Shown here piece after piece: positions 34,624-58,624 of a DNA stretch of 64,000 nucleotides (position 1 is the stretch's first letter; every line of letters starts with the position of its first letter). The stretch is from the sequence record NC_005260.1. One strand, written 5' to 3'. A program made the translations under genes and the position numbers. The notes below the pieces were generated by a model, which made no database searches, was not told the origin of the DNA, and saw only the letters and a list, made by a program, of their open reading frames with translations.

Positions 34624-36228
34624 ATGTCTAAGAAATCTCTCCTGAAAAAATGGCAGCCGCTGGTAGAAAGTGAAGGTATGCCTGCTATTGCTTCTATGAA
34701 GCGTAAGGATATCGTCGCTCGTATCTTCGAAAACCAGGACGAAGATATTGCACATAACGAAGGTGGTGTGTATACTGATCAGGTAGTTGTTAACTCCATG
34801 GTTGACGTTAAGGGTCGTATCGAAGAAGCCCGTTTGGCAGAAGCCAACATCGGCGGTGATCACGGCTATGATGCTACCAAGATCGCTTCTGGCGAAACCT
34901 CTGGCTCCATCACCAACGTCGGTCCTGCTGTTATGGGTCTGGTACGTCGTGCTATCCCGCAACTGATTGCGTTTGATATCTGCGGTGTTCAGCCGATGAC
35001 TAGCTCTACCGGTCAAGTGTTCACTCTGCGTGCCATCTACGGTGGTAACTCTCAGGATGCTAACGCTCGCGAAGCTTTCCACCCAACCTACGGTCCGGAT
35101 GCTGATTTCTCTGGTCGTGGTGCTGCTCAAGATATCGCTGTGTTTGTTCGTGGTACTGCTGTTGCTTCTGGCGCATTCGCTAAACTGCATATTGAAGCTG
35201 CTACCGGTGTTCAAGCTGGTACCAAGACTGTTCAGTTTATCAAGGATTACGCTGTTGACGCGCTGCCTGCTGATCAAACCGAAGCCGGTCTGGCTTACAA
35301 ATGGCTGCTGGCTAACGGCTACGCTGTAGAAACTAGCTCTGCAATGGCTACCGCTTTTGCTGAACTGCAACAAGGTTTCAACGGTTCTGCCGATAACGAG
35401 TGGAACGAAATGTCATTCCGTATTGACAAGCAAGTTGTTGAAGCGAAATCTCGTCAACTGAAAGCTCAATACTCTATCGAAATGGCTCAAGATCTGCGCG
35501 CCGTTCACGGTCTGGACGCTGACAGCGAACTGTCTAGCATTCTGGCTAACGAAATCATGCACGAAATCAACCGTGAAATGGTTCTGTGGATTAACGCTAC
35601 TGCTAAAGTAGGTAAGACTGGCTGGACTAACATGCACGGTGGTAAAGCTGGTGTGTTCGACTTCCAAGACACCAAAGATATTCGTGGTGCTCGTTGGGCT
35701 GGTGAAAGCTACAAAGCTCTGGTAGTTCAGATCGACAAAGAAGCTAACGAAATCGCCCGTCAAACCGGTCGCGGTCAAGGTAACTTCATCATCTGTTCTC
35801 GTAACGTTGCCGCTGCTCTGGGTCACACCGACATGCTGATGACTCCGGCTGTTATGGGTGCTAACACCACCATGAATACCGACACCACTTCTAGTCTGTT
35901 CGCTGGTGTTCTGGCTGGTAAGTATCGTGTGTATATCGATCAGTACGCTGTTGAAGATTACTTCACCGTAGGCTACAAGGGCGCTTCTGAAATGGATGCT
36001 GGCCTGTACTACTGCCCATACGTTGCGCTGACCCCACTGCGTGGTACCGATCCTAAGAACTTCCAACCAGTTCTGGGCTTCAAGACTCGCTACGGTGTTA
36101 AACTGCACCCAATGGCTGACGCTACCCAGAATAAAGGGTTCGCTAAGATCAGCAACGGTATGCCGCAACACACCAACATGTTCGGTAAGAACGCATTCTT
36201 CCGTCGTGTACTGGTTGCTGGTGTTTAA
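34624..36228 (+). CDS. 23: Major capsid protein gp23
   Basis: GPAVMGLVRRAIPQLIAFDICGVQPM, EAKSRQLKAQYSIE, FKTRYG. Confidence 0.99.
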   Translation: MSKKSLLKKWQPLVESEGMPAIASMKRKDIVARIFENQDEDIAHNEGGVYTDQVVVNSMVDVKGRIEEARLAEANIGGDHGYDATKIASGETSGSITNVGPAVMGLVRRAIPQLIAFDICGVQPMTSSTGQVFTLRAIYGGNSQDANAREAFHPTYGPDADFSGRGAAQDIAVFVRGTAVASGAFAKLHIEAATGVQAGTKTVQFIKDYAVDALPADQTEAGLAYKWLLANGYAVETSSAMATAFAELQQGFNGSADNEWNEMSFRIDKQVVEAKSRQLKAQYSIEMAQDLRAVHGLDADSELSSILANEIMHEINREMVLWINATAKVGKTGWTNMHGGKAGVFDFQDTKDIRGARWAGESYKALVVQIDKEANEIARQTGRGQGNFIICSRNVAAALGHTDMLMTPAVMGANTTMNTDTTSSLFAGVLAGKYRVYIDQYAVEDYFTVGYKGASEMDAGLYYCPYVALTPLRGTDPKNFQPVLGFKTRYGVKLHPMADATQNKGFAKISNGMPQHTNMFGKNAFFRRVLVAGV

Positions 36229-36314: not shown

Positions 36315-37493
36315 ATGCTAAAGAACTTAATTGCGGAGTCTAGCGGTGCAAATAGCATTGAATCTGGACGTCCGTCTCTGGTAGCTCTTACCAGAAAAAC
36401 ACAAGATATGATTTATAAAGATCTTGTATGTATTCAGCCGACCAAACAACCACTTGCCACAGTCTATGGAATGCGTTTGGATTACGTTGCAAAAGACGGT
36501 AGTGGTTATGATATTCAATTAGATCACCGCACTCATGGTGGTCAATTTAAGATTGGATATTCTACATTACCGGCACCAACAAATGTACATGCGGAAGGAG
36601 ATCAATTCCAGTTTAATCAGTATGCATTTGAGGTCATTAAAGTTGGTGATTATGTAACTGGATATACTACCGAAGAAGATTATCATCGTGCGATGTTGCG
36701 AGGCGAATTGCGTCTTCTGTCTGACGGTATTGATTACGGCAACGAACAAGATGGCACAGAAGTTGTTCCGGAGACTAAATTTATTCTGAATCGTTGGACC
36801 GCTCTAGTTCGAGCACGTAAGATGAAATGTCCAGTAACTATTGAATTGCTACAAGATATGGAGCGTGAGAGTTTGAACTCCGACGCGACAATCGAAGATC
36901 TCCTGGCTACTTCAATTGCGACTGAAATCAACACCGATATTATCTCCAAGTTGATTTGTGTTAGTACAAAAGAGAAGGAACTTAGTCTAATCAACTACGA
37001 AACTACCTATTATCAGGGTCGCGAATTGATTACTCGCGCTTGTACTATGGCAGCAGAAATCGAGTGGTATACTTCGTTTGAAGCTACTTATCTGGTAGTT
37101 AGTTATAAGCTTGATGGCATTATTCGTGCAAGTGGACAAGTTGACGACAGAGGATATATTCGTGGTACAAAAATGAAATTAATGATGGACGGAAACGCTA
37201 TTGTTGATTATATGATGGTAGGTACCAAATTTGATGGCGGAGAGAATTCTGTAGATAATGCGAGTGGACTATTCTATTCACCATACCAGGAAGCCGATGA
37301 AGCTGGGACATTCTTGGTAACATCTGAACCAGGGTCGATTCAACCTGTTGTTGGTGTAATTACTAGATATGCTTTGAGTTGCTTCCCGGATTACGCTGAT
37401 ATTTCACAGGGCGCTAAGCCAAATGGAGAAGATTGGCAGAAAGCCGCAAACCGTAGTATTTTCGTTCGACTGACTCCAGTCGTCGTTGAATAA
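36315..37493 (+). CDS. 24: Capsid vertex protein gp24
   Basis: GRPSLVALT, QPTKQPLATVYG; gp23-paralog pattern; synteny. Confidence 0.9.
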   Translation: MLKNLIAESSGANSIESGRPSLVALTRKTQDMIYKDLVCIQPTKQPLATVYGMRLDYVAKDGSGYDIQLDHRTHGGQFKIGYSTLPAPTNVHAEGDQFQFNQYAFEVIKVGDYVTGYTTEEDYHRAMLRGELRLLSDGIDYGNEQDGTEVVPETKFILNRWTALVRARKMKCPVTIELLQDMERESLNSDATIEDLLATSIATEINTDIISKLICVSTKEKELSLINYETTYYQGRELITRACTMAAEIEWYTSFEATYLVVSYKLDGIIRASGQVDDRGYIRGTKMKLMMDGNAIVDYMMVGTKFDGGENSVDNASGLFYSPYQEADEAGTFLVTSEPGSIQPVVGVITRYALSCFPDYADISQGAKPNGEDWQKAANRSIFVRLTPVVVE

Positions 37494-57271: not shown

Positions 57272-57308
57272 AAAAAAATGGGGACAATCTTTCGACTGTC
57301 CCCATTTT
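57272..57308 (-). terminator. Terminator after 30.9
   Basis: AAAATGGGGACA/TGTCCCCATTTT with U7 on minus. Confidence 0.85.
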
Positions 57309-57332: not shown

Positions 57333-57761
57333 TCACTTACCGCGACGAACTTTCTTTTTTGCAACAGGCGCTTGAGTTGCTGCACCAGCAGGACGCGGAG
57401 CGTGACGCTTGAACTTGAACTCGGTACGCTGGGTTTCGGCATCAACGATGCGATTTTGCTTGCCCAGTACCAGAGCTTCGGCATCTTTCACGTACTTGTA
57501 TACGCGCTCGGCCTTGCGTACCAGACGAGTCAGAGCAACGTCCAGACGGGATTCTTGTGCGCCTTTCTTCGGGTTCTTCGGACCGGCGTAGCCCCAACGA
57601 GCAGACTTGGCAACTGCTTTCTTGAGTGCAGTCTTTGCGACTTCATCTTGCGGCTGGTCAGCGATATGACGATTCAGATCGCGTTCTTTGTTCTTAGCGA
57701 ACAGAGAAGTTGATTTGTAGATTGCGAAGTGACCTTTACCGCGGCGAGATTTCTTAGCCAT
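57333..57761 (-). CDS. 30.9: Extended gp30.9-like basic protein
   Basis: SARWGY...SRLDVALTRLVRKAERV resembles T4 30.9; downstream of rIII. Confidence 0.55.
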   Translation of the reverse strand: MAKKSRRGKGHFAIYKSTSLFAKNKERDLNRHIADQPQDEVAKTALKKAVAKSARWGYAGPKNPKKGAQESRLDVALTRLVRKAERVYKYVKDAEALVLGKQNRIVDAETQRTEFKFKRHAPRPAGAATQAPVAKKKVRRGK

Positions 57762-57918
57762 TTTTAATTTCCTTTTGTATGGATTCTATGAGTTCATTAA
57801 CAACGTCATCACCGAAATCAGTTTCGATTTCGTCAACGCTGAGTGTCCAACGAGCTGTGATCTTTCTTGGCTTAGCCTTAATAACAGCCCGTTCGATTTT
57901 TATTTCTATCAGATCAGT
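57754..57918 (-). other. Start-less 54-codon frame in frame with rIII; resembles a gp23 segment
   Basis: TDLIEIKIERAVIKAKPRKITARWTLSVDEIETDFGDDVVNELIESIQKEIKNG*; no ATG/GTG/TTG; stop overlaps the 30.9 start. Confidence 0.6.
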
Positions 57919-58203
57919 TCAGGATTTGAAGTAGTCTTTCAGTTCAGCGGTGATGCCGCGAACAACAGAGCTATCCAGTTCTTTAGCGAAACGCAGACCG
58001 TATCCTTGTTCCATGTCCCACTGGTTGATGTATTCTACCAGTTCAACAGCTTTCTTGTTCTTGGGAAGAGCGGAAGCAACTTCCAGAGCATAAGCCAGAA
58101 CGTCGATAGACGCACCTTGGTTTTCGTGACCGGCATTCCATGCTTGACGTTGAGCAACAACACCACCACGTACCAGGGTTTCAGCAAATTGTTTTACAGA
58201 CAT
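57919..58203 (-). CDS. rIII: Lysis inhibition accessory protein rIII
   Basis: QRQAWNAGHENQGASIDV matches T4 rIII; downstream of gene 31. Confidence 0.92.
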   Translation of the reverse strand: MSVKQFAETLVRGGVVAQRQAWNAGHENQGASIDVLAYALEVASALPKNKKAVELVEYINQWDMEQGYGLRFAKELDSSVVRGITAELKDYFKS

Positions 58204-58213
58204 TTTTATTTCC

Positions 58214-58624
58214 TTAACGAGACAGAAGAGTAAGAGAAGATTTGAACGGTTGTTCAGTTTGTTCTACGGGTTTGCCTTGTGGCTTACCATCATAGATTGT
58301 ACGAATGCCTTTGTAATGCAGAGTCACGAAAATTCGTGCTTCTGTGCTGTTACGCGGGATAAGCCCGTAGGCCATTCGCGGGTCAGGTACGTTACTGTAA
58401 ATCCCACTACCTTGCGGCAGCGCAACGTCTTTACCCATCAACTCTTTGATACTTTCTGGACAGTTTTCACCAACAGAAACGACAGTTCCATACAAAGGAA
58501 TGTCACCTTGATTTCTAACACCAAGAATCAATCCGGCATCAGATTTCAGTTCTTCACCCTTTCGGGCTGCATTACATTCGAGGACCACTTGTTCGTCGAA
58601 TGCTCTAAAACCTAAATCACTCAT
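58214..58624 (-). CDS. 31: Co-chaperonin gp31
   Basis: RAFDEQVVL, SDAGLILG, GTVVSVGE, HYK. Confidence 0.92.
   Translation of the reverse strand: MSDLGFRAFDEQVVLECNAARKGEELKSDAGLILGVRNQGDIPLYGTVVSVGENCPESIKELMGKDVALPQGSGIYSNVPDPRMAYGLIPRNSTEARIFVTLHYKGIRTIYDGKPQGKPVEQTEQPFKSSLTLLSR

Follow-up and report, generated by a model that had tools for sequence, protein, structure and literature searches.

What is the open reading frame that follows the stop codon of the lysis-inhibition gene rIII in Aeromonas phage Aeh1, and how could it be translated? In this phage rIII ends in a UGA codon, and the same frame stays open for a further 54 codons. The window in which this was seen is a stretch of 64,000 nucleotides (nt) of sequence record NC_005260.1, which matches Aeh1 at 100% identity (AY266303.2; record coordinate = window coordinate + 124000). 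Aeh1 is a 233-kb T4-type double-stranded DNA (dsDNA) phage (Straboviridae, Cinqassovirus). Profile searches and substitution patterns argue that the frame, here called ORF54, is a genuine coding module of a small, hitherto undescribed family of phage proteins copying one conserved block of the T4-type major capsid protein. UGA read-through, giving a RIII protein extended to 149 amino acids (aa), is tentatively preferred as the best single explanation of its expression. The features of this junction are:

57919..58203, minus strand: rIII, lysis-inhibition accessory protein of 94 aa, TGA included; PHROG 1457 (expectation value (E) 2e-27); named rIII in AY266303.2.
57919..57921, minus strand: the rIII stop TGA, followed by A (57918), context TCC TGA A; TGA-ACT-GAT-C is invariant across the five ORF54-bearing genomes.
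57757..57918, minus strand: ORF54, 54 sense codons in the rIII frame (TDLIEIKIERAVIKAKPRKITARWTLSVDEIETDFGDDVVNELIESIQKEIKNG), without ATG, GTG or TTG; unannotated; by profile comparison homologous to residues 263-311 in gp23, the major capsid protein.
57754..57756, minus strand: the TAA closing ORF54, inside AAATGGCTAA; overlaps codons 2-3 of the next gene.

The original prediction had described an rIII gene ending in TGA-A and followed by 54 open codons without ATG, GTG or TTG and without a Shine-Dalgarno (SD) sequence, and frame and motif checks bore this out. No in-frame ATG, GTG or TTG occurs in ORF54 of Aeh1 or in the relatives' versions of 54-56 codons. SD-like 4-mers are absent from the first 39 nt after the TGA in Aeh1 and from the first ~100 nt in the other allele of ORF54 (described below). 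The remaining two sense frames over ORF54 contain 6-9 stops. The overlap between the closing TAA and the start of the next gene was also described correctly (TAA 57754-57756, ATG 57759-57761). The gap occupied by ORF54 (157-160 nt) carries no annotation in any GenBank or RefSeq record of these phages; having no start, ORF54 escaped every gene caller, which is a practical caution for annotation.

An open frame of 54 codons alone is not rare, with a chance of ~5-8%. In a crude scan for post-stop extensions among the 75 long ORFs of the window, the rIII extension was the sole start-less one of at least 50 codons; the others have a canonical start within their first 15 codons, i.e. they are the next gene. 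Stop usage in the window is TAA 72%, TGA 23% and TAG 5%, and the presence of TGA alone is weak evidence.

The evidence for what ORF54 encodes comes from its resemblance to gp23 (Aeh1 gp23: 34624-36228; gp24: 36315-37493). The corresponding parts are:

35410..35556, plus strand: the gp23 segment resembled by ORF54 (residues 263-311 of 534); in T4-type major capsid proteins this block ranks second in conservation.
57847..57909, minus strand: ORF54 residues 4-24, the basic strand-like part (IKAKPRKITARW); pairs with the long gp23 beta-strand 263-282 of the P domain and I-linker 2 (hhalign).
57760..57843, minus strand: ORF54 residues 26-53, the acidic part (DEIETDFGDD) followed by a helix; pairs with the short P-domain helix 285-295 and spine-helix residues 299-311.

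A likeness to Aeh1 gp23 had been proposed by eye. Profile methods upheld it (hhalign P 5.5e-7), whereas pairwise BLASTP of the 54-mer against Aeh1 gp23 and gp24 gave nothing significant (gp23 E 17). The counterpart segment, placed at 35410-35565, was the right one, with its end corrected to 35556. Three ORF54 versions match Pfam Gp23 (PF07068) with E 0.003-0.11, always at profile positions 134-186; the scores are 12.4-17.3 bits against a curated cut-off of 24.4, and ~48 of the 376 profile positions are covered. Each of the three also matches PHROG 138 (major head protein). When the family profile (A1) was compared with all PDB sequences, the best four hits were T4 gp23 (E 0.013-0.018, T4 residues 249-297) and the next, unrelated, had an E of 0.81. 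Alignment of A1 with an alignment of 81 gp23 homologues in hhalign gave a probability of 92% and a score of 45 (48 columns, Aeh1 gp23 263-311). In 150 column shuffles the mean score was 12.7 and the maximum 19.9, none near the observed 45. The same gp23 segment was found with the Aeromonas sequences alone (score 36) and with two distant family members alone (score 41).

The invariant residues of gp23 263-311 include M263, F265, I267, A274, R277, L279, K280, A281, Y283 and E286. An AlphaFold (AF2) model of Aeh1 gp23 places strands at 263-273 and 275-282, a short helix at 285-295 and the spine helix at 299-326. ORF54 retains both the strand with its basic residues, KAKPRKITARW, and the acidic DEIETDFGDD stretch, so that the order of strand, helix and helix and the basic-then-acidic charge pattern are those of gp23 (PF07068, PHROG 138; PDB 5VF3, 6UZC). 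According to T4 head structures, inter-capsomer contacts in the prohead involve the short acidic P-domain helix and the basic P-domain strand region, reinforced by I-domain linker 2 (PMC9546572). ORF54 differs from gp23 in having no A domain, P loop or I domain and is therefore unable to form a capsid subunit. By these comparisons it is a homologue of a capsid-protein fragment and not a capsid protein. It is only 25% identical to the resident gp23 and hence not a recent duplicate. Modelled alone with AF2, the 54-mer is an extended chain with one helix (residues 37-53) at low confidence (predicted local distance difference test 67), usable for secondary structure only, as such a piece is expected to need a partner.

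The module is very rare. An exhaustive HMMER search of 1.84 billion representative sequences detected one relative, P0001 (E 2.5e-4, 43% identity), and a word-indexed search with the family alignment retrieved the same single protein. P0001 has 68 aa, starts with ATG and lies on a 12.6-kb metagenomic phage contig. A tblastn search of phage genomes added gp023 of Serratia phage Muldoon (Muldoon_023, 141 aa), the N-terminus of which is 44% identical to ORF54. A metagenome scan yielded three further proteins with the module N-terminal or internal (L016, 110 aa; L017, 150 aa; L019, 114 aa), as well as a capsid protein proper, of 494 aa, in which the AKPRKLKxxW signature recurs. The distant family proteins match PHROG 138 at the same positions with E from 1e-5 to 2e-8. 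The family motif is [IV]x[AP]K.RKL.AKW[TS], after which come an acidic stretch and a helix; A15, R18, K19 and W24 are invariant. No homologue was found in 185,579 bacterial genomes scanned with the family alignment, and in IMG/VR the scans, run once with rIII and once with the family alignment, yielded nothing beyond the known Aeromonas phages and a single metagenomic contig.

Unlike ORF54, the P0001, Muldoon gp023, L016, L017 and L019 proteins have an ATG that is often coupled to an upstream stop, carry other, unrelated extra domains, and do not stand behind rIII. As they use an ordinary ATG, the module can serve free-standing or N-terminally and not only fused. In Muldoon, an unannotated 41-codon ORF, picked out of the DNA by eye, lies upstream of gp023 (~2377-2503, locus L009); its C-terminal half is hydrophobic. 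The likely start of gp023 is the ATG that overlaps the TGA of this upstream ORF (ATGA), while the record uses a GTG four codons earlier.

Among Aeromonas phages the ORF54 arrangement is common to avDM12-TAAL, Ah1, AsFcp_2 and PX29. In each, rIII closes with TGA ACT GAT C; the 55-56 codons that come next are open, lack a canonical start and end over the beginning of the next gene, the ORF259c homologue. The other sense and antisense frames are closed in these four genomes. AsFcp_1 and AsFcp_4 also encode the peptide. Conservation of both the UGA and the downstream frame had been put forward as a check, and it was found in these four relatives; neither an ordinary start nor a missing UGA was seen among close relatives carrying ORF54. 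The agreement of several independently deposited genomes excludes a sequencing error. ZPAH1, an Aeromonas phage at a greater distance, has no insert, its 71-aa gp30.9 starting 11 nt after rIII, and this junction and that of phiAS5 show that ORF54 was inserted between rIII and a gene of the 30.9 type.

The locus is mosaic. Gene 31 and most of rIII of Aeh1 resemble avDM12/Ah1, while the rIII 3' end resembles PX29 (95-100%). For ORF54 itself, avDM12/Ah1 group with PX29 (90-98%) and Aeh1 is only 65-85% identical to these. ORF54 thus exists as two alleles which were exchanged as a cassette, with the left break directly after TGAACTGATC. Across four distinct sequences there is no stop or frameshift, and the sole indel is of 3 nt and keeps the frame. 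Over window positions 57400-58620 the closest relative of Aeh1 switches at least 4 times within 1.2 kb: avDM12/Ah1 (31, rIII), PX29 (rIII 3' end), neither (ORF54), PX29/phiAS5 (start of 30.9) and avDM12 from ~57610. A separate observation concerns the corresponding spacer of phiAS5 and phiWae14 (positions 2235-2316 of loci L006/L007), which holds a hairpin rich in guanine and cytosine, GCGGAAAGTACGCTTTCCGC. This hairpin lacks a T-run and may serve RNA stability or processing.

The two alleles allow a test of selection. Of the 162 aligned nt, 35 differ between them, and the counts at the three codon positions are 13:4:18 (chi-square p ~0.013, by hand). Amino-acid identity between them is 37/54, which was reached in only 1.2-1.5% of neutral simulations. 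The ratio of nonsynonymous to synonymous substitution rates (dN/dS) between the alleles is 0.35-0.43, versus 0.1-0.26 for the neighbouring genes. The 13:4:18 pattern indicates protein-level selection, and since both alleles are start-less, the frame under this selection would have had no canonical start. The open frame as such is uninformative on selection, because neutral simulations stay stop-free over the observed divergence in 31-41% of cases.

How such a frame would be reached by ribosomes depends on its surroundings. The local minus-strand gene order is cd, 31.1, 31, rIII, ORF259c, and the relevant features are:

58214..58624, minus strand: gene 31 (GroES-like co-chaperonin for gp23), directly upstream of rIII; PHROG 931 (E 4e-34), Pfam Cpn10.
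57770..57774, minus strand: AAGGA, the SD sequence of the next gene, within the last ORF54 codons; also kept in phiAS5, which is without ORF54.
57333..57761, minus strand: Aeh1ORF259c, a basic 142-aa protein and extended relative of gp30.9; ATG 57759-57761; PHROG 18475 (E 3e-79).
57275..57308, minus strand: the first terminator-like hairpin 3' of rIII, ORF54 and 30.9; no terminator separates these three.

The label 30.9 for ORF259c comes from the ZPAH1 protein annotated gp30.9 (40% identity over 35 aa, E 2e-6). Aeh1ORF259c is very basic, has a weak Pfam DUF7022 match and is twice the length of the 71-aa ZPAH1 protein, to which it is related via its middle part. The proximity of ORF54 to gene 31 had been given weight in the original prediction. 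Gene 31 and rIII are indeed adjacent, but this is probably incidental, since rIII and 30.9 were the original neighbours and the family's other members occur in unrelated contexts.

With no terminator between rIII and 30.9, ORF54 lies on the rIII mRNA. As it has neither start nor SD sequence, it is reachable only by ribosomes coming from rIII. The module would have been inserted between rIII and 30.9 in the Aeh1/Ah1/PX29 group, in the rIII frame and two to four codons behind the UGA-A. The UGA may then occasionally be decoded by tRNA-Trp as a near-cognate, and the product would be a minor 149-aa RIII isoform with the capsid-block mimic as a C-terminal tail, beside the abundant 94-aa RIII. Such a tail, presumably unable to fold alone, may act by strand addition and charge complementarity with the usual partners of the gp23 block. 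Candidate partners include unassembled gp23, the edge of a capsomer or, on the host side, a factor or a defence sensor recognising the invariant block.

Both the shared frame and the TGA are expected under read-through; otherwise they are a coincidence of ~8% (1/3 x 0.23). The UGA had been called leaky from its context in enterobacteria; the TGA-A context is present, but the host is an Aeromonas and not an enterobacterium. A fusion is plausible since the module is carried with varied partners (N-terminal, internal or alone). A further point in favour is that Aeh1 encodes its own tRNA-Trp(CCA). The N-terminal part of L017 was considered as an rIII-like domain, i.e. a natural fusion, and is not rIII-like. 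The closest parallel is phage Qbeta, where read-through of the coat protein gene gives the minor capsid protein A1. There, too, UGA is followed by A and by a long in-frame extension that lacks its own initiation signals, and a minor extended isoform occurs beside an abundant short one. Qbeta differs in being a single-stranded RNA phage in which the extension is essential and experimentally proven; in dsDNA phage Aeh1 a putative extension of 54 aa follows a lysis-inhibition gene and is absent from close relatives.

Several observations weigh against read-through. In phiAS5 and phiWae14 rIII ends in TAA and is followed by an 82-nt spacer with a hairpin and no insert. The rIII 3' end together with TGAACTGATC is one recently exchanged tract (95-100% identical) that takes in the first 10 nt past the end of rIII, so the five genomes are not independent for the stop or the frame and amount to about one observation. 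The distant family members (68-150 aa) all start with ATG. The phage tRNA-Trp(CCA) has the pair C11-G24 and not the A24 of the Hirsh suppressor. No suppressor tRNA with a UCA anticodon is found among the 23 tRNAs of the Aeh1 cluster, and no tRNA in the window, positions 1-74000 of the record lying outside the scan. The read-through yield would be at most a few percent of RIII, and selection on the tail would accordingly be weak. The dN/dS below 1 was obtained between the alleles; within the younger one (PX29/Ah1/avDM12) ~2 synonymous changes stand against 10 nonsynonymous. Ah1 ORF54 (L003 2234-2401) has four substitutions relative to its near-twin avDM12-TAAL, all nonsynonymous; three non-conservative changes private to Ah1 (K to N, R to S, G to S) fall on family-conserved positions. 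Between avDM12 and Ah1 the synonymous to nonsynonymous counts are 0 : 4 in ORF54 and 9 : 2 in the flanking 1.1 kb (Fisher p ~0.01, by hand). These recent changes would fit either drift or diversifying selection alike.

Two annotation differences were seen in the Aeh1 tRNA cluster, which lies outside the window (L021 22384-22505, 34092-34183, 40904-41008). ARAGORN finds a tRNA-Tyr (GTA) unlisted in GenBank, and it misses two unusually long annotated tRNAs, a tRNA-Val (122 nt) and the second tRNA-Glu (105 nt).

The alternative that survives best is a decaying remnant. A capsid-fragment gene would have been inserted behind rIII and either never been expressed there or lost its start, with the frame and the TGA coincidental. 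The absence of start, SD sequence and annotation would follow from this, as would the mostly nonsynonymous recent changes (2:10), the changes private to Ah1 and the contrast with the flanking genes (Fisher p ~0.01). The insert-free phiAS5, phiWae14 and ZPAH1, the extreme rarity of the family (one match among 1.84 billion representatives) and a neutral expectation of 31-41% stop-free sequences are also compatible with decay. It does not, however, account for the strongly spared second codon positions between the alleles (13:4:18) at a dN/dS of ~0.4, both alleles being start-less. A selection signal in start-less alleles contradicts a single early loss of the start, so two late independent losses would be needed. 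The lack of frameshifts and stops in the four distinct sequences, the only indel being of 3 nt, and the family-invariant residues kept in both alleles also argue against a remnant, which is considered somewhat unlikely.

Re-initiation after the rIII UGA at a near-cognate codon would release a free mimic of 50-52 aa, starting at CUG +7 or AUA +10 in Aeh1 and at CUG +13 in the other allele. The candidates nearest the stop in Aeh1 are:

57907..57912, minus strand: near-cognate codons CTG (57910-57912) and ATA (57907-57909), neither with an upstream SD sequence.

A CTG lies 6-12 nt past the stop in every allele, in the other allele a single one 12 nt past the TGA, and the distant homologues are free-standing, their ATG overlapping or abutting an upstream stop (the ATGA overlap in Muldoon; P0001; L016). 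Those coupled homologues nevertheless use ATG, and no Aeromonas-phage copy of ORF54 with a canonical start was found. In bacteria, initiation at CUG and AUA is very poor, and the SD sequence that might assist them is missing. The start Met of Muldoon gp023 aligns with ATA in Aeh1 and with CTG in PX29 and the rest of the other allele; P0001 has Ile in this column, and gp23 its invariant M263. This is a conserved hydrophobic strand position at which I, L or M needs no start-codon explanation, and so no lost ancestral ATG need be assumed. Re-initiation also does not predict the shared frame and the TGA, and is unlikely on balance.

An RNA-level role (a spacer, a stability element or hairpins tuning 30.9 translation, with the peptide irrelevant) is very improbable. 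The two predicted hairpins (fold slightly stabler than shuffles, z score -1.98; two pairs with compensatory changes) and the hairpin in the shorter phiAS5 spacer would suit it. The RNAalifold covariation term is +0.44 kcal/mol, about zero and not favourable, several pairs are broken, no Rfam match was obtained, and the spared second codon positions and the protein-family profile homology would be left unexplained. A gene on the opposite strand (a 51-aa ATG frame at 57779-57934 or a 152-aa TTG frame at 57775-58233) can practically be dismissed: both antisense frames are open in Aeh1 but only there, with stops and no ATG in the other four genomes, the 152-aa frame merely mirrors rIII, the substitutions in the 51-aa frame (4:13:18) are not coding-like, and both are mirror-frame artefacts.

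ORF54 is not the only small protein of Aeh1 that copies a conserved gp23 block. Aeh1ORF176c (140 aa; AY266303.2 109698-110120, minus strand; L021:35698-36120), which lies outside the window, belongs to PHROG 12830 (E 1e-62). Its C-terminus PKLIAEEICGVQPMTGHTSKIYTL copies another block, AIPQLIAFDICGVQPMTSSTGQVFTL (around DICGVQPM), the most conserved of gp23. The Gol region is described in a review as the most conserved part of gp23 (PMC3014915). Going by that description, the block copied by Aeh1ORF176c probably corresponds to the Gol region, the activator of the Lit protease. Homologues in PHROG 12830 occur in T4-type phages of Aeromonas, Citrobacter, Cronobacter and Vibrio and bear the RefSeq label 'major head protein', which is a mislabel. 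These proteins differ from ORF54 in the block copied, in having an ordinary start and in being widespread, and the two share no sequence similarity. The two types do not co-occur as a rule, because phiAS5 has the PHROG 12830 gene without ORF54.

On the L016 contig (JACCDT010289194.1) both types are found in overlapping genes, 147-506 with the VQPM-type block (IAQEIVGVQPMT) and 503-835 with the AKPRKLKAKW-type block. In this gene pair both blocks are N-terminal, and the C-terminal parts look alike by eye. As the two blocks flank the gp23 insertion domain, the two L016 proteins might pair. A PHROG 12830-type neighbour was considered as a general rule for the distant family members and is present in L016 only.

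Capsid proteins trigger several bacterial defence systems (PMC9712102, PMC13728456). Fragments of this kind are therefore obvious candidates for decoys, for triggers or for modulators of assembly. The part played by the copied block in the capsid and the literature on capsid-triggered defence lead us to infer that the ORF54 product might be a decoy for capsid-sensing immunity or a head-assembly modulator, the two roles named in the original prediction. Literature searches found no description of Aeh1 rIII, of small gp23-like ORFs or of capsid-fragment decoys, and no precedent for such decoys. We know of no sensor for the gp23 263-311 block. To our knowledge, programmed stop-codon read-through has not been reported for a T4-type phage.

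The broadest reading would hold that programmed UGA read-through in T4-type Aeromonas phages makes a minor RIII isoform with a tail mimicking the inter-capsomer contact block, which physically links lysis inhibition or a decoy function to head assembly or capsid-sensing immunity, ORF54 and PHROG 12830 being two arms of a general strategy of deploying conserved capsid-block copies; as a whole this is a long shot. If the read-through is real, a large dsDNA phage would here be using programmed stop-codon read-through, a rarity, and a capsid mimic would be attached to a lysis-timing protein. Capsid-fragment proteins of this kind are easy to test in laboratory phage-host pairs. Whatever the expression route, the analysis shows that in T4-type phages there are small genes duplicating gp23's two most conserved blocks, the ORF54 block and the Gol-like PHROG 12830 block.

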